Of a DNA stretch of 25,473 bases, positions 917-25,349 are shown in pieces. A model generated the notes under the pieces. It worked only from the letters and a program-made list of their open reading frames with translations, had not been told where the DNA came from and did no database searches. The translations under genes and the position numbers were made by a program. Positions within the stretch are counted from its first letter, which is position 1; each line of letters opens with the position of its first letter. The DNA comes from Andalucia godoyi And28 (taxonomy: Eukaryota; Protista; Jakobida), in assembly GCA_009859145.1 (NCBI GenBank), contig VRVR01000032.1, positions 276,402-301,874 on the forward strand, given 5' to 3'.

Positions 917-2974
917 TCACTCAGAAAATTGGTAATCCCATCGGTTGAGTATAAAATGGAATATTTCGGATGACCGTTCTTGAGCAGTCTCAAATGTCCA
1001 GTTTCGAAACCGGGTCAGTTCTCTTTCCATTAAGATATCGGAATGCTCGTAAGTGTAAGAAATTGTTCCTGAGCATTTTTGATGAAAAGGATGGCGAGAC
1101 AACAGAACATTTCCGCGCGAAATGACTAAATTTCCCAAATTTTGAACATTCTTGTTGGGATGATTCCAATGCTCCCACCCCTCCAGCCTGGAAGAAAATG
1201 CAGACTGAGGGCATATGTGCTCCACAGAATACTTGAACTTATTGTGAAATGCGGACGACGGCCATAACACAGATTGTTCAGGATTCGCTCCATAACTGGA
1301 ATACAGGCTGTACTCGTATTCGAACAACAAATACCGTAACAAAGGAAAGAAGTCCTCACTCAAATCATGTTCCGGTTTGGAAAAAAAGTTGGAAAAAAGG
1401 TCATATCCACCCTTTTCAACAGTCTTTTTCACAAATTCTCGAAGATCTGTCAGCGTTTGGGTATCATCTCGAGAACCTTCGAAATATTTTCGAGCAATCG
1501 ACGCAAAACGCTTCTTTCCAGTGCCGGAATTGCGAACACCTGGAGCGTATATTATAAATATGGCTCTCTCCAGCTCCTGCATAACTCGGATAAAAAAGGA
1601 GGGGCTTGACTGGGTTTCAACAGTCCTGCAAAATACCGAAATCAGAAGTGGAAGAACAAGTGAAGGTCTTGAGAGACGCTTCAACTTGTCAAACCAGAGC
1701 ATCAATGTCGACTGAAACTGGCTCCACTCTTCATCTGTCTGCACAGCCTCAGTCCTGAGTGGAGAAATAGAAGACAGAAAAAGGCGCCGGAATTCTAGAT
1801 CCTCCTCGTTATCGCCAACAGCAGCACAAAAGAAGGCGACAAAAGCATTCAAACCGATCTGGATGGTGCGCAGAAACTTTGTCAACGATTCGATACTCGA
1901 CAACATTGCCGCAGGCTCTCCTGGATGGAACCTGTTGGATCCACAAATCTCTTTCAAATTCCAAATGAGGGTTTTGGACTTGGTCTGCGAACTGAGAGTT
2001 CCTTCGCATACAAAAGAAAGAAACGCCACTTCGTGGTCAAAGGAGGATTTCTTCATCATTGGAAATCGTGAGAATATGAGTTCCCAGGTATGCAACACGC
2101 CGTGACAAAGCCCATGACGATGCATTGGATCCGGATGCTTGCTGAACATGTATAGAAGAAAGTTTTTGACGAGATCTAACTGAGACAACGGAACTCCGCG
2201 ATTGTTTAGAACCTCAAAGAGCCGCCCTGCGGCTTCTGCAGACTCGACAATGTTCAGAGAGAATTTCACACGAATCCGAATTGTATTCTGAAGATGTAAT
2301 ATGAAAGTCCGGAATCCACTGAGATCGTTTTGAAATGTTTGTGACTGTGCTGTGGTCAGTCGCTCATCGAAGAATGCAAAAGCCGAGTTGATGAGTCGAA
2401 CAGCAGGGATTTCTCGATAAAGAGCAAGATCTTCCATATCCATTTCCAGATCATCCTCAGTTGTGTGCTGCAAGGGACTCGAAACAGAAGCAGCATCCTG
2501 GATAACTTCAGGGTCTGCTCCAATACTAACATTAGATGGTAATGAGGTCGTGATTCCAGACAAACTGAGTCGAAAAAAATCTGCGAGATTATGGTTCAAC
2601 TGGATTCGAGAAAACTGGCGATCCGCGGTATCATACCAAAATAATTTGTTGTCGATGTCAATTCTCAGTGGATCCGAAAGATCGAGAAATTTTCGGATAG
2701 AAGCTAAAACCACAGCACAGCATGTAAGGCGTTGTTGCCCATCAACAACTTCAAAACACTGAACATCAGTTTGAAAGCGATCTTTTTGAGTACCGGTTTT
2801 TGAAAGGTACACTGCACCCATCAAATAAGGTTCATCTTGGCAGTTTATGTCATTCCAGAAGTCCATGAGTTGCGAATCGCCCCAAGCAAAACATCGTTGA
2901 TAGTCTGGGATCCTCAAGATTGCGTTCTGAAGAATATGATCGAAATTCTGAACTTGTGACTGAAAGGAAGCCAT
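917..2974 (-). CDS. GmrSD-family (type IV restriction-like) protein: N-terminal DUF262 (ParB/Srx-fold NTPase) plus C-terminal DUF1524 (HNH nuclease)
   Basis: DUF262 motifs IPDYQRxFAW (IPDYQR at 2894-2911), VVDGQQRLT (DGQQR at 2729-2743) and LFEVLNNRGVPLSQLDLVKN. DUF1524 motifs SVEHICPQ (EHICPQ at 1205-1222), NLGNLVI..GNxLLSRHPFHQK and a terminal WTFETAQERSSEIFHFILNRW helix. The track start at 2995 is TTG; the first ATG is at 2974 (685 aa). Confidence 0.9.
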   Translation of the reverse strand: MASFQSQVQNFDHILQNAILRIPDYQRCFAWGDSQLMDFWNDINCQDEPYLMGAVYLSKTGTQKDRFQTDVQCFEVVDGQQRLTCCAVVLASIRKFLDLSDPLRIDIDNKLFWYDTADRQFSRIQLNHNLADFFRLSLSGITTSLPSNVSIGADPEVIQDAASVSSPLQHTTEDDLEMDMEDLALYREIPAVRLINSAFAFFDERLTTAQSQTFQNDLSGFRTFILHLQNTIRIRVKFSLNIVESAEAAGRLFEVLNNRGVPLSQLDLVKNFLLYMFSKHPDPMHRHGLCHGVLHTWELIFSRFPMMKKSSFDHEVAFLSFVCEGTLSSQTKSKTLIWNLKEICGSNRFHPGEPAAMLSSIESLTKFLRTIQIGLNAFVAFFCAAVGDNEEDLEFRRLFLSSISPLRTEAVQTDEEWSQFQSTLMLWFDKLKRLSRPSLVLPLLISVFCRTVETQSSPSFFIRVMQELERAIFIIYAPGVRNSGTGKKRFASIARKYFEGSRDDTQTLTDLREFVKKTVEKGGYDLFSNFFSKPEHDLSEDFFPLLRYLLFEYEYSLYSSYGANPEQSVLWPSSAFHNKFKYSVEHICPQSAFSSRLEGWEHWNHPNKNVQNLGNLVISRGNVLLSRHPFHQKCSGTISYTYEHSDILMERELTRFRNWTFETAQERSSEIFHFILNRWDYQFSE

Positions 2975-3419
2975 GATGCGTGAGGAAAGACACAAAATTT
3001 TGGCTCAGTCGGAACTTGGTCGAGAACATACAATGGGGAAGCGAGCCCGCAAAGGGGAGCGATTTTCTAACCATTCAAAGCTTCTCTCAGCCATGGACTC
3101 GTTTTTCCCACCGAGCCGTTGGGTGCAGGGGTCAGGGAGCTGGGGATGAAGGTCGGATGCGGAGTGCCCGAGGAAGCGCAGGATCTTTCATTTGTAGCGC
3201 ATGTGTGGTGGACCAAGCAGATTGCGAGGAACTTGAACCTGGATCCCGGAGCGCGAAGCGGATGCACGAGCAGATCAACTCCAACTCATGCAAAGACCGA
3301 ATCTGTGAGTTTGTGTTCTCCAGTGGCATCCATTCTTTGCTTTTCTGCGGATGCTTTTGCTTCTTATTTGTGTGTTTCAGAAATTGCTGTTGCTGGTTTT
3401 TTGAATTGTGCAGTCTGCA

Positions 3420-5390
3420 ATGAGCCATTCGAAAGTGCGTGTTGACGGCCTCGTGCTCTGTGCGCTTGCTGAAGAAGCTCGTCATTTTGCAGACGTTGCT
3501 CGAGAAACATACAAGAATTTTCGAAATTCCAGCGAGACTGCGGGGAACATCAATTACGTACTGCTGGAGATACCACAGAATGCAACCCATACTCGCTCAG
3601 AAGGGGGTCAACGCAGTGACCGTGTGGTGCGCCTTGCAGTCGTGACATGTTTCCGCGAAGGTGGTGGAAATTGTGCTTCGTTCCTAATGTCAACCATTCA
3701 GCAAGAGTTTGATTTTGACTGCGTCCTTATGCCAGGAATCTGTGCCGGAGCTGAAGGCGAAATGCGGCTCGGTGATGTTTTGCTTGTTGAAAAGGCTGTG
3801 TCTGTGACTGAGCATGTGAAAGAGTCTCAGTCAGCTGACGGCACGCAGCACCATGCTGCAGACGTGGAACCGGTCACAGTGTCCGAGACGTTCCGTCAAA
3901 AAGCACGTGTTTTTGCCGATTCCAAGACGATAGTTGACGCTTTGCGACAGCGTCCTCTCCACCGGGATATTTCCTCGATGTGTCTTTACATTCTCAAGTG
4001 TTCACAGGAAGAAATGGGGCCGGTGGCTTTCGAAGAAGCGGTCACCACGAAAGCCCACGAACTCTGGGATCCACATAGTCTCTCGGTTTCTGTGGAAGAT
4101 GCACTGAATTTCGCGTTTATAAAACTGGAAAAAAACCGGTATGGGTTGTCCGACAATGAATCTGGAAGGTTCGTTGTAACTGACAAGGGAAACTCATTCT
4201 ACCAGGCCCATCTTGAAAAAGTGTCTTACATGAACAGGAGAAAATTCCCTTTCCACGATACTCCATTGGCATCCATTGTCTGTGGCACAATGATGACTGC
4301 TCCTGGAGTGCGGGCCGATCTCAGTCCGGAAGAGTTCGCTCGACTTCGATCCCTATTAGGAGCCCGGAAGGCCATGGGACTCGATATGGAGATTCATGAT
4401 GTGTACCGTGCCGCCAAGTCTCTTGGAAAGCAGTTTATTGCGGCCAAGGGCGTTTCGGATTTTGGAACGTCTTGGAAAGACGACATTTTCCACCCTGCAG
4501 CCTCTCGAAATTCAGCATTCGTCCTGCTAATGTTTGCATCATCGCATCTTGACTGCTCACAGCGCGGCACTTCCGCTGCATCTTCATACGCAATTCTCGA
4601 TGAAGTTCTGAAAGAAATTCGCGCCGGTTATGATTCCCAGCCACAGCGGTTGCTCTCTCTGGAGGCCCATCCTCACGTACTTCGTTATGCTGAGAACAAC
4701 AAGCTTGCTCAGCAGTATGTTGCAACTGTGGAACGACTCCAGAAAGAAAGCGCGGTTCTTCGAGATCTGCAGAATCGTTTCGGCGCGGAGCAGGAAAAGA
4801 TTCGAAAACAGGCACTGCAGGACTTAGGACTAGAGTCACTTCCAAAACAGCTGCAGAAGCCAACAAGGTATCTGAAGGATCTGTCCTACGGTACATATGT
4901 TTTGCAAAGTTCTGATTCTACTGGCAACCCATGCACCGTTGAGGTTCGTATCGAACCTATAGTTCGATTCTCCAGAGACAACGTGCTCAGTATTTTGAGC
5001 AAGGACGTTGCAAAGGAAGTTGTGATGAACTGCTGTACCAAGAGAATTGATATTCTGCTGGACGGAAAATCTGAACTGCTGCACTTGGGAGACGACGATG
5101 GCGGTGATGACGGTGACGACAACGACAACGATGATGAACTAACCAGTATGAATGACGCAGTTTCGAATGACTGGCGCAAAGAGACTGTGGAGGGCTCATC
5201 ATTCTGCGTTGGCTACTGGGTCAAGCCGTCTGATGACGGCAGGTACTTTCTGAAGATCTTGAAGACGGATTCACCTGCGGATTGCATCGATCATGTTGTG
5301 GATGAAGGCGCGCTGCAAGCTTTCGAAGCCCATGAAAGCAAAGGAACAGCGTACGGCAAGTTCATCAAAGGAAAGATGCCGCACCTCTAG
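3420..5390 (+). CDS. Purine nucleoside phosphorylase / MTA-SAH nucleosidase-fold (PNP_UDP_1) protein with a winged-helix-like insertion, a coiled coil and an unknown C-terminal domain
   Basis: PNP motifs in order: VLCALAEEA; VLMPGICAG..GEMRLGDVLL; VCGTMMT; GLDME (4377-4391); AAKGVSDFG..KDD.FH..ASRNSA. The track start at 3408 is GTG; the first ATG is at 3420. Confidence 0.85.
   Translation: MSHSKVRVDGLVLCALAEEARHFADVARETYKNFRNSSETAGNINYVLLEIPQNATHTRSEGGQRSDRVVRLAVVTCFREGGGNCASFLMSTIQQEFDFDCVLMPGICAGAEGEMRLGDVLLVEKAVSVTEHVKESQSADGTQHHAADVEPVTVSETFRQKARVFADSKTIVDALRQRPLHRDISSMCLYILKCSQEEMGPVAFEEAVTTKAHELWDPHSLSVSVEDALNFAFIKLEKNRYGLSDNESGRFVVTDKGNSFYQAHLEKVSYMNRRKFPFHDTPLASIVCGTMMTAPGVRADLSPEEFARLRSLLGARKAMGLDMEIHDVYRAAKSLGKQFIAAKGVSDFGTSWKDDIFHPAASRNSAFVLLMFASSHLDCSQRGTSAASSYAILDEVLKEIRAGYDSQPQRLLSLEAHPHVLRYAENNKLAQQYVATVERLQKESAVLRDLQNRFGAEQEKIRKQALQDLGLESLPKQLQKPTRYLKDLSYGTYVLQSSDSTGNPCTVEVRIEPIVRFSRDNVLSILSKDVAKEVVMNCCTKRIDILLDGKSELLHLGDDDGGDDGDDNDNDDELTSMNDAVSNDWRKETVEGSSFCVGYWVKPSDDGRYFLKILKTDSPADCIDHVVDEGALQAFEAHESKGTAYGKFIKGKMPHL
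5091..5138 (+). repeat. Asp-rich low-complexity coding tract (GAC/GAT/AAC triplets)
   Basis: gacgacgatggcggtgatgacggtgacgacaacgacaacgatgatgaa encodes DDDGGDDGDDNDNDDE. Confidence 0.8.
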
Positions 5391-5577
5391 GATCTCCTCG
5401 CGATGTGAGAAGGACTCCTCGCAGCCAATCGGTGGTTGGAGACTCCCTTTAATCATGGGAAGCATCCGGCACGAAGGAATAAACATTTCGGTTGAAAAGA
5501 AAAAAGAACAACAACGAAAACGAGAACTTTACACGACGCCGGACCGCTGCAGTGAGGTTCAATTGGAAGCCGGCTGC

Positions 5578-6726
5578 TCATTCCTCTTGAAACCTCCGGT
5601 ATTCCGAGGAACTCTGCAGCTCTAGTGGCACTGCAGCCGCCGACGTGGAGGCCTTCATTACCGCCTCCAGTCGTCGACGCAGCACCCAGCAGTAAAAGAA
5701 CATAGCAACCGCAGCGAAGGCAACGAACGCAAAGAGAATCTCGAAAGCCAGCGTGGTCTCGTCGGAATTGTCGGACGAGCGGGGCGGTGGAACGAAAGGA
5801 AGGGAAGGAGGGGGAACGACCTCTGTGACAGGCGTTGCACTGTCCAGAGTGACCACCCACGTGAAATCCGACTGACCTGGAGATACCATGGAGTAGTACA
5901 CAAGATTCTTGGTTGCATTGGCGTCCCAAAGCGAACACTCGGGTACCGTGCAGGTTGGCAATGTGAAAAGCGAAAAGTTCGTCGTCGGTGGTCGAGGTTG
6001 AAGCAGAAAGGACGCGGTGCCCTGACTCGACGAGATGACATTTCCAATGTGGATAAACTCTTCGGCAGCCGGTCGTGTGGATCCAGTTGCGTTATAGATC
6101 GAGGTGAGTTGTGTCTGATTGACGGTTGCAGAGCCACTCACAAATTCTCCAACCATATCCATTTTGAATGCAAGCAATTCGTTCCCAGACGAATAGGTCC
6201 AAGACGTGATATTGACGAACAGGTACACGGTGTCATCTTCCAAGGTGATATTTTGAAACTGTGCCTTCACGGGGGATGAGATGTACGTCACCGACAGGGT
6301 GCCCTTGGAAGGAATGTCAATGGTGGAAACGTACGGAATGAAGCCATATTGCGACGGACCCGAGTGCGGTGCAAATTGACTCCAATCCGCATACGCCACG
6401 TCGTACTTTTGAAACCCACTGCACGAATCCGGAGAAAAGGTCTTGTTGAAACCGCTGCAATCCGATGTACTGTACTCGATGACAGAAAGGAGTCCCAAGT
6501 GCACAGAGTAGGATGAGAAGTGTTGACGCGGAGCCTCGGGAACCGTGAAATGATCTGTGTCCACATCCAGTGTGAGATTGAGAACTCCCGAAACCGAATT
6601 TGCGGTGGAGGAAAAGGTGACGTGTGGGAACGATTCCGCAGGAGCGTAAGCAGCAATCGAAGGGATCACTTGGTCCATGATTTGGCGGTGCACAGACCGA
6701 ACATGGGCACGCGTGAGTGGCAACAT
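5578..6726 (-). CDS. Predicted type I membrane glycoprotein: beta-rich ectodomain, Pro-rich stalk, single TM helix, short cytosolic tail
   Basis: Many N-x-S/T sequons (NLT, NKT, NIT twice, NQT, NAT twice, NFS). Stalk VVPPPSLPFVPPP. TM segment LAFEILFAFVAFAAVAMFFYCWVL followed by RRR. No recognisable signal peptide. Confidence 0.75.
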   Translation of the reverse strand: MLPLTRAHVRSVHRQIMDQVIPSIAAYAPAESFPHVTFSSTANSVSGVLNLTLDVDTDHFTVPEAPRQHFSSYSVHLGLLSVIEYSTSDCSGFNKTFSPDSCSGFQKYDVAYADWSQFAPHSGPSQYGFIPYVSTIDIPSKGTLSVTYISSPVKAQFQNITLEDDTVYLFVNITSWTYSSGNELLAFKMDMVGEFVSGSATVNQTQLTSIYNATGSTRPAAEEFIHIGNVISSSQGTASFLLQPRPPTTNFSLFTLPTCTVPECSLWDANATKNLVYYSMVSPGQSDFTWVVTLDSATPVTEVVPPPSLPFVPPPRSSDNSDETTLAFEILFAFVAFAAVAMFFYCWVLRRRLEAVMKASTSAAAVPLELQSSSEYRRFQEE

Positions 6727-8178
6727 GGAATCAAAAAAGGACTGAAGCGCAGCCGATTGGAATCGATACTTGTTCGCCGTGGATCAAATTCTGGAGCTGT
6801 TGCGGTTCCATTCTGCATGCAAGAGGTGTGTCGAAGTAGGACTGGGGGGTAGTTGCTTGCGAATATTGCTTGAGAAAGAGTCTGACCAGTGCTGCAGAAG
6901 ACGTGGGCATCAAATGAATGAGTGCGTTCGAATGCTTTTTGATCTGCAAGGTACGGATCCTCGACATTCGGTGCGAGGCGCAGACCGCTTCCTGGGAACG
7001 TATTTCCACTTGTTATCTGAATTTATGACTGGATCTATCGCAGACGTCGTGCGGTTTTGATTGAGCGTCAGCCGAGTTTTTGGAAAGAAGAATTGGTATG
7101 GAATCCTGTGAATCCGAATATGGACTCGCAGGTGCCGTTGGAAAGGATATCTGAACGATCCGATCGTTTGGATCGTATGGAAAATTCTAATGTTATAGCC
7201 GTTTCATCCATGACGCAATAATGGTTATGGGCGGCCGCTGTTTGGCCCCCCGAAGTCACGAGGTTGATTCTTGACGACCATACATCCATACTTGAAAGGA
7301 TTTTACACTTTTGTTTGTTCTTTTGTATGCCACTGTAAATCACCGACCTACCTACCATGCTGACCAGAATTCATCTAAGTCCTGTACAAAGTACTCGTTT
7401 TCTGTTCCGTCCTGGGCACGTTACGTATGCGCTGCAGAAACTAGTCAAAATCTGCAGCCAGAAATCCTCGCCGTCGTCGCTTTTCTGTAACGATTAGCCC
7501 CGAAATTGAAAGGATTTGTTCGACTTTCAATACTAAATGCCTTGATTTATTCGAATCTTACAGCAAAGGGGGAGACTATGCTTTTCCCAAATTTGCATCA
7601 TTCTGGCGGTCCAACCTTTCATCCATCATTTAATTGAGGCACACCTGGGTACATATGAAGCCAGGCCATACCCTGCAAGTCGAAGAATGATACGAGGGAA
7701 CAAACAAGGCACACTTCAATTGGGTACGATTTTCCAATTACAGGGCGAAGAAGAGCACAAATGCCGTCAGCAAATCCCTTTTTCAAAGTTGACCACATTT
7801 CTCTCCCAATCTTCCTCAATAGCGATGATCCATTCTTCAGCATCGATATTCACTGTCAAGCACCTCATAAATTGATTCTCTTGCTGAAGCGGGTGCAGAA
7901 AATACATGATGGATTTCTCTTATTGGAAGGCCAGTCTTTGTAGAGGGATTTCGGCTCATCGTGCCCAACACAATGAAAATAAGGATCCATTAAAATTGGT
8001 CTTCATAGGGAGTGATGATCACTCAGAGTGCAACAAATACGTTTTGCTGAATTCAGCTCTGTTCCCATCTGTTACAGTGTTTTATTTTTGCGATTCAAGA
8101 GACATGGAAATCTTTTCAACACACCAAGTTGAGATTGCTAGGCTGCTCATTGATTTGTATTGTTGCTGCAACGTCAAA

Positions 8179-20381: not shown

Positions 20382-23300
20382 ATGAACCAGAATTTGGTGC
20401 AGCAATGGGAAGCCGTCAACCGACGAGAGTCATATGGAGTTTGGATGCCAGGGCCGCGACTGCAGACGATTCAAAATTTTTGGTCTGCAGCAGTGATGTC
20501 GAATGGCCGGATCTATGTGATCGGCAATGGTGATCAAGTCGAAATCCTCGATACGCCCGTGTCGAGCTCTGCTTCGGCATGGAGACGGACGAGAGGCCCC
20601 TCTCTGACTCGTGGTCTCCCTAGTTCCTGGACGGCCGTTGAACTCAATGGCGCTATTTTCTGTGTTGGTGGAAATGATGTGCACCGTCTTGAAGATTCTG
20701 CCGATGCGCAGTGGAGACTCCTTGATCCCAAATTGCGGTCTTTTCGTACCAGCCATTGTGCAGTATCGTTGAAGGGACGCATCTACGTTCTTGGCGGAAG
20801 TTCCGAACCGAACGACCTCTCTTCTATTGAGAATTACGATCCACAGAAGGATGGTTGGTTTCTTGAATCTCATTCCATGAATGTGGGTCGGAAGCAGTTT
20901 GCATCTGTGGCTGATCCCACGCACAAATGCATTTATGCGATTGGGGGATATTCGTATGAAGGAGGGCTTGCAAGTGTTGAGAGGCGTGATCTTCGAGCGG
21001 AAAAGTGGTCTCTTATGGCACCGATGAGTATGCGTCGCTATGGACATTCTGCAGTGTTTGTCTGTGGCTTGATCTATGCCATGGGAGGATGTGGAATTAG
21101 GAATGTCGAGATTTACGAACCTCGAATGAACAAGTGGTTTGAGGGTCCCAGCTTGAGTGTTGTGCGACATTATGGGGCCGCAGTGAGCATTGACAATCGC
21201 ATTCTTGCAATTGGAGGCAGTGATGAGGGGTCCACAGAAATCCTGCATCTCATTCTAGCTGCTGACTGTTCTGTGAGTGCTCGTTGCCGTGCAGTATCTT
21301 CCCCATCTTCCGAATCTGGGTTTGATCTGTGTCTCTCATCTGCCGAGTATCTTGTGCGCAACAAGGTTGTGGCTCCTTTGGAAACACCAACGAGTGATCC
21401 ATCGAATCGTTCTCTGCTGGATGACCTCGATGCATCGCGTCCGTTAGGATTCCCAGTTCCCAGTGTCAAAGAGGTGAAGATTGATATTTCCGATATCGAG
21501 ATTGATGATGACGTATGGGTCCGACCATCGCGCGTGCGTCTGCTGGTTGTGGGGAATGCACGAGTGGGAAAGACGAGCTTGATCAAGAACTTGTCGTCTG
21601 GTGGGACAGAATTTGATACGAATGAGAATTCAACGGAAGTGGGCGATGTGAAGACAATGGAGATATCCATACGAAATCATGCGTGGGTCGATACCACGCA
21701 TGGCACTGGAACAACGTTGCTGTCACGGTTGATGCAGCAGCAGGTTGAAAAAGGGAAGCCTGAGATGATGGCACCGCTTCGAAATACGGTTGATACGACT
21801 AGTGGCCAAGCAAGTGAAGAGCCAGCAATGCCTCCACCAGCTTCCGCCCACGTTGACAATTCAGCGAGTCCGACAACAGAGAGTCAAGTGCCATCTGGGT
21901 CCACTTCGCAACCATCACCGAATGTTCCTCGCGAGCGTGTGATTGCGACTGAACGCATCGATGTTACCACTCGAGTGTTGACAGAACTGGAGAAGGAAAC
22001 GCTATCGGTGAGCGTTCTTGATTTTGCGGGTCAAAACGTGTTTCGGGTTTTTGATCCACTCTTTTTCGGTACGAAGTCCCTGTATTTTTGTGTGTTTAAC
22101 TTACGGGTTCTGCACGATGCCCATGGAAAAGGTTTCCTGGAGAAGGCAATTGAGGAGAATGTCATTTCATGGCTGCGCATCATTGCCAATGTTGGTGCGT
22201 GCAATGTTTCAATGCACGGAACGTTGTCAAAGGTGGTGCTGATTGGAACACACGGTGGATTTGCACATAATGAGACTTCTCAACAGCGGGAAGCGTTTTT
22301 GAAGGCGATCAACGCATTCATCAAACGATTTCTGGAACAACCGCAGTTGGGTGCGTTTTTTGAAGTGTGTCGGTTCCGCAGCAATTTGTGTTTTATGATT
22401 GTCGAAAATAATCCTCGTCATCGCGATGATTCTTTGCGACAGGGGCAAGTGAGGATGATGAAGTGGCTCTCGAAAACGATTGAAGAATTCCATCGTCGTC
22501 TGCCAAAAGTTCTTCTACGTAACCTTGTTCTAGAGCAGATGTGCCGAGAATGCAAGGATGTTGTTCTCGCAGTAGACAGCATTCGCGATAGGATTCGAGG
22601 CATTGCCAGTGTGTGCAGGACGAATATCGAGATGAAGAAATGCTTTGATGACCTGGTTGCTCTGGGTTGCTTTTTTGCTTGTTCCTCGGATGGACACATG
22701 ATTGTTCTGCAACCGGATGCCTTCATCCAAACCTGTGCTCAGCTGATTCCGCAGACACAGGATCATAATGATGGTGATGTTGATAATAATGGCATTGATG
22801 ATGATGATAGCGATGATAATGGTCATGGCGAGGGTGTTGGTGGGATAATGAGTGTCCATCACTCAGAAAAGACTGTTTACAAGTATTTGTTGGAGAATGC
22901 TGGTATTATTCCGTATGAAACTGCGAAACTGATTCTGGAAGGGCATCTTCTTGCCAACGAGATTGGCCCTGCTGATTCTCACAGCTTGGTAGCAAATCAG
23001 GTTCTTGCGATGCTCGTCACGCTTGGTGTTGTGGTTCCAATGGACCCAGAATCCAAACTCGCATTTTTCCCACAGTGGCATCGCCATTGTGATTCGCTCA
23101 TAGGCTCTCCTGATACGCTTGAGAGTCGCTGGAAGACGGAATGCTCCGAGAAGGTTGGATTCAAGCTTGTTTCGTGCTCCGTGCGGTGCGTTGGTCTTGG
23201 ACACTTGATCGGGATCATTGACGGGATAGTCACGGATCTGCATTTCTGGCGTTTCATCACGTTCCTGGGAAAGCGGTCTCTGTATCCTGACATTTCTCTT

Positions 23301-25349
23301 AAGTCTCCCCCGGCACTGGGGCTTGATGTGATCGTTTGTCGTCCTAACGCTTCCGGTTCTGGTTCCTGTTCCTTGCAGTCCAGAATCCGTCTTGATCGAA
23401 AGCAGGGAACATCGTCGATCTTCCATTTTGATACACTGTCTTCCCCTCGTGAGACGGATGTGCCAGACTTGGTTGCCCTGTTGACAGCGTTTCTGAACGA
23501 GGATCTGATGTCCAAGTCTGTGCTTTCGTGTGAGCTGGTCGCCCCACCTGTCGTCCAGGTTGTGTCTGCTCGTGGTCCATCTCTTTCGTCCTGCACACGA
23601 TCCGAATTCACAGCCGCTTTCCATGCAAACATGAATCCTTTTCTCAATTATTTTGCAACTCATTATGAAGCAATTTTCACGGATGCAGTGCATGCCCTGT
23701 ATGACGTTAACCCTGGACTATCGGATGGCGTGTTGGCAATGGATAATCGAGAAGGCGCTGTGAAACGGTGGATGCAAATGATCGTTCTGAATCCGAAGCA
23801 TGAGGATGCATTTTCCCGTTTCCACGATTTCCTGTCTCACCATCATGTACTATTCGAGGATGTCAACGCCATTCTCTTTCCACCTTTTGCGAGTATTCCG
23901 ACCCGCGCTGCTTCCCAAGCGCCCACTGCGCATGGAGCGGCATCTTCGTCGCAGGCGTCGCGGCCACATGATGCACCCTTTTCAATCGGCAATCTTCCTT
24001 CCCGGTCGCAGTTTTTGCAGATTTACCACGAGAATGCCTCGTCCATCCATGACTATCTGGTCCAGCATGATCAGTTGATGAAGGATGCGGTTGCCAGCCT
24101 TCCAATTGCGCAAGGAAAAGGATGGACCAGTGTCCTGGCTCGCAAACTCGGGGAGTCGCCTCCGCAAGCTGCGCAGTGGTTTGTCGGCAGCTGTTTATCC
24201 GTCTCGGATCAGTCATTGAAAGACTTCTGGACTTTTCTCAATGTTCAAGGATCAAACATTCTGAACGGGTTCATTTCTGTTTTCAATGCCCATTCTCCAG
24301 GCATGCAGCACACACAGCCTGCTCGAGTGCCGCCCGGCGTTGGGATTATTCTGACTGTAACCCCCGAAGAGGGCACAGCCGTCAAAGTCGCATTCATCCA
24401 GCTGTGTGACGTTGGAAAGACAGCAAAGAATGTTTCAGAGAATAGTCGTAACCAGCTCCTGGAATCTCTTTGCGGGAAGGAGGATCCTTCCTTACCTGAC
24501 TTTTTGGATTTCAAGCGCGTGTCTGTGGAGTGCATTGAGGCCAGGACGAAGCTTTCCGACGACCACGACCATCTTCTGAGGTTCCAGACTTACGTTTTCC
24601 GAAACAAGAGCCGCGGCAATGCGGAAGTGTACCGGCTGCATCACATCAGCTTTGGCGACGTCCAAGGATCAGTTCATTTTGCGGTAGTCGTGCCCCAGTT
24701 ACTGCTGCATTTCAAGCCGTCGCACGTCCTTGTCTCGGGTGTTTGTGCCGGGTATCCGGGATACAACGACATTGGCTTCGGGACCGTCGTTGTGGCAACG
24801 GATGTGTTTAGTGTGACACAAGGCAAGGCGACGCACGAAAGCATGAAATTCGACATTGAAAGGATCACCCTGAATTCTGCGCCGGGTGCGAATCTCCAAG
24901 CACTGATCTCCAACACAGTGAGCGTGTGGAATGCAAAGATCGAGGATCCATCTTCTGGCATAGCGACGTTCATTGCGGCTTCCGCGGCCGCCAAAAGGAT
25001 GCCGAGTTCCACTTCCCCGAATGACATCCCGATCAAGGCCAATGCACTGACCGGCTCGATTGGCTGTGCAGTGGACTTTGTCAAGGAGGATCTCCAAAAC
25101 AAAGCAGGATGGGACCAGCTGCGCAGAGATACCGCATCCCGCAAGCTGCGTGCCATCGAGATGGAAGGCGTTGGAATTGCCAAGGCGATTGAGAATGAAC
25201 CCAGGAAACCAATCTTCTTGTTCCAAAAGGCAGTGATGGACTTCGCAGGATCGCGAACGGACGCTGCAAAGCCGTATGCTTCCTTCACTAGCGCTCTGTT
25301 CGCCGCGCAGTTCCTGTTCTGCAGTGTTCTGCCCGAGTTGTACGAGTAG
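20382..25349 (+). CDS. ROCO-family protein: Kelch propeller - Roc GTPase - COR - two tandem CARD/death-fold-like repeats - C-terminal PNP_UDP_1 nucleosidase domain
   Basis: About six Kelch repeats (e.g. GRIYVLGG..SIENYDPQKDGW; IYAIGGY..SVERRDLRAEKWSLMAPM). Roc G1 GNARVGKTS (21552-21578), G3 DFAGQ (22020-22034), G4-like LIGTH. COR-like LVALGCFF..IVLQPDAFIQ. PNP from about 24336: GIILTVTPEEG, VLVSGVCAG..GFGTVVVA, AIEMEG (25152-25169), QKAVMDFA..AKPYASFTSA. An in-frame TGA 18 nt upstream supports the ATG. Confidence 0.9.
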   Translation: MNQNLVQQWEAVNRRESYGVWMPGPRLQTIQNFWSAAVMSNGRIYVIGNGDQVEILDTPVSSSASAWRRTRGPSLTRGLPSSWTAVELNGAIFCVGGNDVHRLEDSADAQWRLLDPKLRSFRTSHCAVSLKGRIYVLGGSSEPNDLSSIENYDPQKDGWFLESHSMNVGRKQFASVADPTHKCIYAIGGYSYEGGLASVERRDLRAEKWSLMAPMSMRRYGHSAVFVCGLIYAMGGCGIRNVEIYEPRMNKWFEGPSLSVVRHYGAAVSIDNRILAIGGSDEGSTEILHLILAADCSVSARCRAVSSPSSESGFDLCLSSAEYLVRNKVVAPLETPTSDPSNRSLLDDLDASRPLGFPVPSVKEVKIDISDIEIDDDVWVRPSRVRLLVVGNARVGKTSLIKNLSSGGTEFDTNENSTEVGDVKTMEISIRNHAWVDTTHGTGTTLLSRLMQQQVEKGKPEMMAPLRNTVDTTSGQASEEPAMPPPASAHVDNSASPTTESQVPSGSTSQPSPNVPRERVIATERIDVTTRVLTELEKETLSVSVLDFAGQNVFRVFDPLFFGTKSLYFCVFNLRVLHDAHGKGFLEKAIEENVISWLRIIANVGACNVSMHGTLSKVVLIGTHGGFAHNETSQQREAFLKAINAFIKRFLEQPQLGAFFEVCRFRSNLCFMIVENNPRHRDDSLRQGQVRMMKWLSKTIEEFHRRLPKVLLRNLVLEQMCRECKDVVLAVDSIRDRIRGIASVCRTNIEMKKCFDDLVALGCFFACSSDGHMIVLQPDAFIQTCAQLIPQTQDHNDGDVDNNGIDDDDSDDNGHGEGVGGIMSVHHSEKTVYKYLLENAGIIPYETAKLILEGHLLANEIGPADSHSLVANQVLAMLVTLGVVVPMDPESKLAFFPQWHRHCDSLIGSPDTLESRWKTECSEKVGFKLVSCSVRCVGLGHLIGIIDGIVTDLHFWRFITFLGKRSLYPDISLKSPPALGLDVIVCRPNASGSGSCSLQSRIRLDRKQGTSSIFHFDTLSSPRETDVPDLVALLTAFLNEDLMSKSVLSCELVAPPVVQVVSARGPSLSSCTRSEFTAAFHANMNPFLNYFATHYEAIFTDAVHALYDVNPGLSDGVLAMDNREGAVKRWMQMIVLNPKHEDAFSRFHDFLSHHHVLFEDVNAILFPPFASIPTRAASQAPTAHGAASSSQASRPHDAPFSIGNLPSRSQFLQIYHENASSIHDYLVQHDQLMKDAVASLPIAQGKGWTSVLARKLGESPPQAAQWFVGSCLSVSDQSLKDFWTFLNVQGSNILNGFISVFNAHSPGMQHTQPARVPPGVGIILTVTPEEGTAVKVAFIQLCDVGKTAKNVSENSRNQLLESLCGKEDPSLPDFLDFKRVSVECIEARTKLSDDHDHLLRFQTYVFRNKSRGNAEVYRLHHISFGDVQGSVHFAVVVPQLLLHFKPSHVLVSGVCAGYPGYNDIGFGTVVVATDVFSVTQGKATHESMKFDIERITLNSAPGANLQALISNTVSVWNAKIEDPSSGIATFIAASAAAKRMPSSTSPNDIPIKANALTGSIGCAVDFVKEDLQNKAGWDQLRRDTASRKLRAIEMEGVGIAKAIENEPRKPIFLFQKAVMDFAGSRTDAAKPYASFTSALFAAQFLFCSVLPELYE
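22761..22826 (+). repeat. Asp/Asn-rich low-complexity insertion in the COR region
   Basis: GAT/AAT triplet expansion encoding DHNDGDVDNNGIDDDDSDDNGH. Confidence 0.75.

Follow-up and report, generated by a model that had tools for sequence, protein, structure and literature searches.

The closest described counterparts of the protein reported here are prokaryotic conflict systems in which leucine-rich repeats (LRR), an AP-GTPase (Roc) and a COR domain are followed by one of at least 24 alternative C-terminal effectors, including PNPase, with many paralogs per genome (Kaur et al. 2021). For a myxobacterium, an LRR-AP-GTPase-COR-PNPase protein is listed in the same work. A second line of comparison leads to nucleosidases of the PNP fold that act on ATP, an activity which Rousset et al. 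2023 demonstrated for PNP domains from immune-like proteins of eukaryotes. DDAN of the sponge Amphimedon queenslandica, which consists of a Death domain and a C-terminal PNP domain, cleaves ATP as well as dATP and proved toxic in Escherichia coli, and mutation of D353 in DtcC abolishes Detocs defence (both Rousset et al. 2023). In the legend to Fig. 4 of that study, which deals with eukaryotic PNP proteins, Roc, COR and LRR are among the domains named. LRR-ROCO proteins are candidate immune receptors in brown algae (PMC11378527, PMC3341825), and Kelch propellers beside Roc-COR are mentioned for Dictyostelium-type Rocos (PMC6320773). Here we analyse a gene of the jakobid flagellate Andalucia godoyi, a free-living and deep-branching protist, in a window of 25,473 nucleotides (the whole stretch of DNA that was studied; contig VRVR01000032.1, positions 276,402 to 301,874, forward strand). 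The gene occupies positions 20382..25349 on the + strand of this window and encodes a protein of 1655 amino acids (aa), whose domains are, in this order, a Kelch propeller, a Roc GTPase, a COR-A-like region, a conserved region at the position of COR-B, two CARD-like helical modules (HM1 and HM2) and a PNP-fold domain.

The whole gene is a single exon of 1655 codons plus stop. Its open reading frame (ORF) is uninterrupted, and the product is 100% identical to the A. godoyi gene model P0001 of the protein collection. By our own estimate, a stop-free run of 1655 codons is beyond chance in DNA of ~49% G+C. The A. godoyi genome is compact (~20 Mb) and introns are mostly absent from it (PMC7050145), which makes a single-exon gene of such size credible. 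The paralogs of the protein carry ANDGO_ identifiers and likewise belong to A. godoyi. Two trivial origins were considered and rejected. An artefact of the gene model or the assembly is ruled out by the continuous reading frame together with the independent occurrence of the order Roc-COR-HM1-PNP in the paralog ANDGO_01445. A bacterial origin of the window, considered for its long ORFs and a GmrSD gene, is ruled out since the close relatives are all A. godoyi nuclear gene models. The original prediction, made from the letters of the window, had described one 1655-aa ORF that joins Kelch, Roc-COR, two death folds and PNP, and in its claim of a single frame it agrees with the gene model.

At the N-terminus, aa ~30-300 (20469..21281, + strand) form a six-blade Kelch beta-propeller, the putative ligand sensor. 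Six blades of the form 'xIYxxGG' can be read directly, Pfam Kelch_1 matches with E 1.6e-31, and the Kelch domains of KLHL20 and KEAP1 in the PDB match at E 1e-24 to 1e-28, so the Kelch assignment of the original prediction is secure. The propeller is followed by a linker (aa 301-382; 21282..21527, +) that is specific to the family, 63-68% identical among close paralogs and without a family match in the Pfam scan.

The NTPase at the centre of the protein belongs to the Roc (Ras of complex) GTPases (aa 383-650; 21528..22331, +). Against PF08477, with its gathering score of 27, the whole protein reaches 36.8 bits and the excised region 42.5 bits, and the best PDB sequence matches of the domain are LRRK2 Roc, as expected from the Roc domain originally proposed. 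An exhaustive HMMER search with aa 375-1370 against 1.84 billion representative proteins gave 46 matches. Among the same proteins, the distant matches of Roc are bona fide Roc-COR proteins, and the nearest ones from outside the family include Roc-COR-TIR proteins (Hondaea, Cymbomonas) and Roc-COR-CHAT (Breviolum). The motifs G1 (GNARVGKT, aa 391-398) and G3 (DFAGQ, aa 547-551) are intact, and an 85-aa low-complexity insert splits the domain at aa 441-525. At the position of G4 we found THGG (aa 623-626, window 22248..22259), which has no Asp; that is, the 1655-aa protein does not possess a complete G1-G4 series with the Asp of [NT]KxD or THxD. NACHT and NB-ARC gave no Pfam match in the protein. 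Judged by its domains, it is NLR-like in layout and is not an NLR.

Directly after Roc lies a COR-A-like tandem winged-helix region (aa ~665-900; 22374..23081, +). When a profile of the post-Roc region from seven family members was compared with bona fide COR-A by hhalign, it aligned over 177 columns (E 8e-5, probability 61%); with a second set of COR-A templates the register was unchanged (E 9e-4, probability 23%, 103 columns). The aligned segments correspond to two winged-helix motifs, 'FDDLVALGCFF...MIVLQPDAFI' and 'VLAMLVTLGVVVPMD'. Moreover, phmmer alignments with three genuine Roc-COR proteins extend from Roc through their COR-A. AlphaFold2 models were computed from shallow alignments, for aa 640-1370 from nine sequences and for aa 1050-1655 from five. 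In the former, the COR-A-like region displays winged-helix-like elements with a predicted local distance difference test score (pLDDT) of 56-77, and Foldseek placed the RocCOR of M. barkeri Roco2 at rank 4 (probability 0.85) with a non-significant E of 0.34. The Pfam COR-A model matched neither the whole protein nor excised segments at E<=10, and the PDB search with the post-Roc profile returned nothing relevant. With this moderate support, COR-A is likely to be present directly after Roc. Within the same region, at aa ~793-816 (window ~22758..22829), we noticed a 24-aa acidic insert, DHNDGDVDNNGIDDDDSDDNGHGE, which the close paralogs do not have.

The 160 aa that follow at the position of COR-B (aa 901-1060; 23082..23561, +) are 63-81% conserved in the family, and their identity is unproven. 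Comparison with bona fide post-COR-A regions by hhalign was not significant (probability 0.07%), the PDB profile search was empty, and the AlphaFold2 model (pLDDT 25-55) lends no support to homology either. Of the Roc-COR claimed by the original prediction, Roc thus stands, COR-A has moderate support from profile comparison and predicted fold, and COR-B finds none in hhalign, PDB profile search or AlphaFold2.

The C-terminal aa 1319-1655 (24336..25346, +) constitute a nucleosidase domain of the PNP/MTAN fold. This fold is confirmed by five profile comparisons, each of them weak, which are independent and concordant: Pfam PF01048 (E 4.7e-5, 23.3 bits), the NCBIfam model of 5'-methylthioadenosine/S-adenosylhomocysteine (MTA/SAH) nucleosidase (E 7e-4, 19.2 bits), the PADLOC models PDC-M60C (E 1.7e-11, 41.6 bits, the strongest) and CBASS PN effector (E 2.3e-4), and a PDB profile search that returned MTAN and DeoD chains only. 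The motifs PEE (aa 1328-1330), GVCAG (aa 1453-1457), EME (aa 1593-1595) and KAVMDF (aa 1616-1621, with K1616 and D1620) can be recognized, and a ~75-aa insert follows the first strand. The EME and KxxxDF motifs of a C-terminal PNP domain, as originally pointed out, are thereby confirmed as present and informative. In DtcC, DDAN, NLRN and MTAN, an EME stands at the position of E1593-M-E1595; D1620 aligns with D353 of DtcC, and K1616 and GVCAG are kept. Across four divergent PNP-like domains of A. godoyi, GxCAG, ME and K...D are invariant.

For pairwise BLASTP, the sequences of DtcC, DDAN and NLRN were taken from the supplementary table of Rousset et al. 2023, and a DtcC-like protein from Prevotella served as fourth partner. 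The PNP domain matched Vibrio alginolyticus DtcC with E 4.5e-6 and sponge DDAN with E 2.3e-7 (23-25% identity over ~230 residues) and the Prevotella protein with E 2e-9; its similarity to NLRN was not detectable (E 7.2). The Prevotella protein came from a pattern scan of bacterial genomes, in which it was the one PNP relative found (Prevotella sp. metagenome-assembled genome, JAGCDO010000008.1, locus 1742..9342). Its locus is a PDC-M60A/B/C set of three genes, whose products are a large protein, a receiver on its own and a receiver fused to PNP; Detocs has been published with this layout. The locus adjoins AbiL (an AbiLi/AbiLii pair). PADLOC's PDC-M60 therefore appears to correspond to Detocs. 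As judged by these matches, the PNP domain of the A. godoyi protein likely belongs to the defensive Cap17/DtcC-like clade rather than to MtnN/DeoD, and we infer that it may cleave ATP or dATP.

Between the COR-B position and the PNP domain, AlphaFold2 predicts two helical bundles of CARD/death-like type, HM1 (aa ~1069-1169; 23586..23888, +; pLDDT 77-88) and HM2 (aa ~1199-1304; 23976..24293, +; pLDDT 83-89). HM2 is a diverged tandem copy of HM1: the two are homologous by full-length alignment (pairwise E 4e-4) and share one helix pattern, with 6-7 helices each, modelled with pLDDT 77-89. With the model of aa 1050-1655 as query, the top Foldseek match out of 350,542 PDB chains was the NLRC4 CARD (6mks_A; probability 0.99, template-modelling score 0.66 on the CARD, non-significant E 0.24), which superposes with a root-mean-square deviation of 3.2 A over 86 columns. 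With the model of aa 640-1370, the NLRC4 CARD (probability 0.66, E 3.0) and a RIP2 CARD/p75 death-domain entry came up again, both at lower rank. These E-values are non-significant in part because the queries are long multi-domain models. Death, CARD, DED and PYD gave no Pfam match beyond noise at E<=10, either with the excised region or with eight module copies taken singly, and a profile of the modules found only weak malate synthase matches in the PDB, which we take as chance. It is therefore fair to describe the module as family-specific and helical, with a CARD-like fold by prediction and a putative role as homotypic adaptor. The 'death-fold x2' of the original prediction survives as two homologous helical modules; a sequence match to a death fold did not materialize, and the neighbourhood to the NLRC4 CARD is not significant.

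The full-length matches among the 46 described above are all from A. godoyi, and seven proteins have the Roc-COR core. Outside A. godoyi, the 1.84 billion representative proteins contain no full-length relative. Relative to its paralog ANDGO_07311 (P0003), the 1655-aa protein is 40% identical in Kelch and 64-91% identical in Roc-COR, as one would expect if a sensor diversified while its switch was conserved. The C-terminal outputs differ among the seven. The 1655-aa protein ends in HM1-HM2-PNP and ANDGO_01445 in HM1-PNP; ANDGO_07311 and ANDGO_00624 end in HM1 alone, and the tails of ANDGO_08376 and ANDGO_04544 contain no recognised domain. In ANDGO_05994 (P0004), a Pol-beta nucleotidyltransferase (aa ~735-1162) replaces the helical modules and PNP. 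It displays GS-x10-DMD followed by VDVLP and matches CBASS cyclases (6e-4, 8e-4) and SMODS (0.19) weakly; the C-terminus found no match in the PDB. To go by its motifs, ANDGO_05994 could be a ROCO-cGAS-like fusion. One more distant Kelch-Roc paralog, ANDGO_08376 (P0060, KAF0852540.1), is named in the source as 'mitochondrial Kelch and P-loop NTPase domain-containing protein', which would imply a predicted mitochondrial location for it.

HM1 occurs in P0002, P0003, P0064, P0061, P0063 and P0102. Two of these, ANDGO_07231 (P0063) and ANDGO_08453 (P0102), are small proteins with HM1 at the head, joined to a second and divergent PNP-like domain, and ANDGO_07253 (P0061) is a stand-alone HM1-HM2 protein of 240 aa, the only place outside the 1655-aa protein where HM2 was found. 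Such composition suggests that the small proteins might act in trans as adaptor or effector partners. Since HM1 is present on sensors as well as effectors, it follows the 'effector-associated domain' pattern by which Kaur et al. defined the death-like domains of bacteria. A second shared adaptor was found neither in the N-termini of P0058 and P0064 nor in the tails of P0060 and P0062. Taken together, the paralogs, the fast Kelch and the exchanged outputs form, as far as the sequences can tell, a pattern typical of immune receptors.

On balance, we consider it slightly more likely than not that the 1655-aa protein senses for immunity or cell death and that its output cleaves nucleotides, which would make it a ROCO-type counterpart of NLRs in which sensor, switch and effector would operate cell-autonomously. 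The original prediction had proposed just such a sensor-switch-effector, and the fast-diverging Kelch, the exchanged C-termini and the conserved catalytic residues speak for it; the oligomerisation through Roc-COR contained in it is assumed only. From architecture, residue conservation and family pattern, all three of which are observed, we infer how such a protein might be activated. The fast-evolving Kelch propeller would bind a foreign or danger ligand. Binding would relieve autoinhibition and shift Roc-COR to another nucleotide state and another dimer state. The helical modules could then pair homotypically, both with copies in cis and with those of two other kinds of A. godoyi protein, the HM1-PNP proteins and the stand-alone HM1-HM2 protein, and the PNP domains would be gathered into active dimers or oligomers. 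In this state they would cut the N-glycosidic bond of ATP or dATP, leading to growth arrest or cell death. PNP/MTAN enzymes act as dimers or larger assemblies.

Several observations weigh against the immune sensor. In 7/7 family members (P0002-4, P0060, P0062 and P0064 in addition to the 1655-aa protein), G4 has no Asp to specify guanine and reads THG, THC, THA or TRG. Since all seven lack this Asp, neither guanine specificity nor a GTP-driven switch is assured, and the switch may be one that is not specific for GTP. COR-B is not demonstrable in the sequence, and the dimerisation step is thus unsupported; given this and the degenerate G4, the Roc-COR oligomerisation of the original prediction is an assumption. 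The PNP domain lies 1.8 bits under the Pfam gathering score of 25.1, word-indexed searches with the domain alone or with a four-sequence profile returned A. godoyi proteins only, and AlphaFold2 left the PNP part of the aa 1050-1655 model unfolded (pLDDT ~30, 5 sequences). Likewise, the CARD-like fold stems from two AlphaFold2 models of 5-9 sequences, and the structural matches of the helical modules, non-significant at E 0.24-3, serve as leads only. Finally, the mitochondrial label of ANDGO_08376 hints at other cell biology.

That same label would suit a ROCO of non-immune signalling, in which Kelch-Roc-COR would serve ordinary cell biology and PNP would be a regulated module for purine or MTA/SAH salvage or for nucleoside sensing, comparable to the Dictyostelium Roco kinases. 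ROCOs with Kelch or WD40 propellers are indeed known in non-immune settings (PMC6320773), and the PDB sequence matches of the PNP domain are all housekeeping MTA/SAH nucleosidases or DeoD. If PNP were such a housekeeping-type enzyme, our finding would shrink to an unusual domain fusion. However, the domain reaches 41.6 bits with the DtcC-type model versus 19.2 with the MTAN model and 23.3 with Pfam, and its better pairwise matches are with validated ATP nucleosidases. Moreover, a swapping of outputs between PNP, nucleotidyltransferase-like and none, combined with a fast Kelch, is unexpected for a housekeeping enzyme. We regard the non-immune ROCO as rather unlikely.

The surroundings of the gene bear on a further explanation. 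Four other large ORFs in the window encode defence-type domains. A 692-aa ORF (917..2995, - strand) combines GmrSD_N (DUF262) with GmrSD_C (DUF1524), two domains that mark a family of type IV restriction-like nucleases; here they are encoded in the nuclear genome of a eukaryote. A 660-aa protein (3408..5390, +) carries an N-terminal Cap17/DtcC-like PNP (PDC-M60C 2.1e-17, CBASS PN effector 1.7e-14, PNP_UDP_1 28.3 bits), which matches the defence-type models more strongly than the PNP of the 1655-aa protein does; its C-terminal part of ~275 aa gave no match. The other two are very large ORFs with a guanylate-binding-protein-like (GBP-like) GTPase domain, at 8179..12183 (-) and 13837..18126 (+). 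One of them additionally contains ankyrin repeats and a weak UBR-box match, the other a protein kinase and tetratricopeptide repeats. The start of the ORF 13837..18126 is overlapped by another ORF, 13047..13982, which may be part of the same gene. By its domain content, most of the window looks like a heterogeneous immune-type gene cluster.

GmrSD-like, Cap17-like PNP and two GBP-like GTPases as neighbours suggest functions against invaders, which argues against a self/non-self or stress-triggered death switch. Such a switch would resemble the fungal HET/NLR incompatibility proteins with PNP_UDP, and its Kelch would read an endogenous protein that is polymorphic or modified by stress. KLHL/KEAP1-type Kelch domains, the best structural relatives in our case, bind endogenous protein degrons, and fungal PNP NLRs are connected to allorecognition in work cited by Rousset et al. 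2023. Both points are in line with the switch, and still it seems quite improbable to us. A. godoyi lives as a single cell and feeds on bacteria, and we know of no cell fusion in this organism. Loss of catalysis in the PNP domain, which would then be a scaffold for dimerisation or nucleotide binding only, would fit its high divergence, its score under the Pfam threshold, the ~75-aa insert and the failure of AlphaFold2 to fold it, but is very unlikely, as GxCAG, ME and K...D are invariant in the four A. godoyi PNP-like domains and match active DtcC, DDAN and NLRN, whereas pseudoenzymes usually lose such residues.

Returning to the immune or cell-death sensor, we tentatively suggest a wider arrangement, which we think possible and no better than that: a ROCO signalosome network in A. 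godoyi, built on a previously undescribed CARD-like module. Sensors ending in HM1 (ANDGO_07311, ANDGO_00624) would recruit the HM1-PNP proteins (ANDGO_07231, ANDGO_08453) and the HM1-HM2 protein (ANDGO_07253) in trans, and the 1655-aa protein would be the all-in-one fusion of these parts. One paralog might instead produce a cGAS-like nucleotide signal, and the genes might be located in a heterogeneous eukaryotic 'defence island'. If true, the network would represent induced-proximity immunity in the style of death folds, with an ATP-depleting output, beyond animals, fungi and plants.

It is mainly from bacteria that immune ATP nucleosidases and conflict proteins with a Roc-COR AP-GTPase have been defined; among eukaryotes, fungi, corals, sponges and algae account for most of the cases so far. 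A jakobid protein in which sensor, switch, adaptor and effector are complete would carry the design to a eukaryotic lineage very distant from these, and in its paralog family one adaptor module is shared across separate sensors and effectors. Such a protein would offer a compact, intron-free test case for a GTPase, not a STAND ATPase, gating an ATP-depleting effector, and likewise for death-like adaptors outside animals and for the clustering of heterogeneous defence genes in unicellular eukaryotes.

How new the protein is depends on the level of comparison. The ROCO-PNP design itself is not new: the original prediction did not recognise a Kelch-ROCO-PNP fusion, and although this exact architecture is not described, ROCO-PNP in general already is (Kaur et al. 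2021; legend to Fig. 4 in Rousset et al. 2023). Likewise, its statement that immune PNP domains are usually N-terminal has to be read beside the sponge DDAN, in which a C-terminal PNP next to a Death domain was already known and assayed. What is new is that Kelch, Roc-COR, two CARD-like modules and PNP occur together in one protein, that this protein is from Discoba, that its G4 is degenerate, and that it comes with a putative network of trans-acting modules.

With the system of Kaur et al. 2021, the A. godoyi protein shares the N-terminal repeat sensor, Roc, COR, the C-terminal PNP-type effector and multiple paralogs with differing effectors. The features that mark AP-GTPase conflict systems (repeat sensor, AP-GTPase, COR, variable effector, paralogs) were all found, with Kelch and not LRR as the sensor. 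Judged by its description, the listed myxobacterial protein differs: the A. godoyi protein is eukaryotic, has Kelch in place of LRR, two CARD-like modules and a degenerate G4, and its COR-B is undetected. DDAN has a death-type helical module right upstream of its C-terminal PNP as well, and the two PNP domains share 25% identity over 225 aa (E 2.3e-7) including GVCxG, EMEG and KAVxD. In contrast to the A. godoyi modules, which match Death, CARD, DED or PYD at sequence level in no case, the Death domain of DDAN is recognisable by Pfam, and DDAN has neither Kelch nor Roc-COR.

The Detocs effector DtcC and the CBASS effector Cap17 supply the best profile matches (PDC-M60C 1.7e-11, CBASS PN 2.3e-4) and, with D353, the counterpart of D1620. 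However, these effectors are activated by phosphotransfer or cyclic oligonucleotides and are encoded in multi-gene bacterial operons, whereas the A. godoyi PNP is fused to a GTPase-type sensor. Among the canonical ROCOs (LRRK2, DAPK1, MFHAS1, and the Rocos of C. tepidum and M. barkeri), LRRK2 has the nearest Roc, and a COR-A-like tandem winged helix follows Roc here, too. DAPK1 ends in a death domain. Unlike the canonical ROCOs, the A. godoyi protein has no kinase, LRR or ankyrin repeats, its G4 reads THGG, its COR-B is unrecognisable and its Roc contains the 85-aa insert. Fungal and coral PNP NLRs (NLRN, Hyaloscypha variabilis) also combine sensor repeats, an NTPase switch and a PNP effector, but their switch is a STAND ATPase (NACHT/NB-ARC) and their effector N-terminal. 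Protist Roc-COR-TIR and Roc-COR-CHAT proteins and algal LRR-ROCOs, finally, have other sensors and effectors, and Kelch, helical modules and PNP occur in none of those examined.

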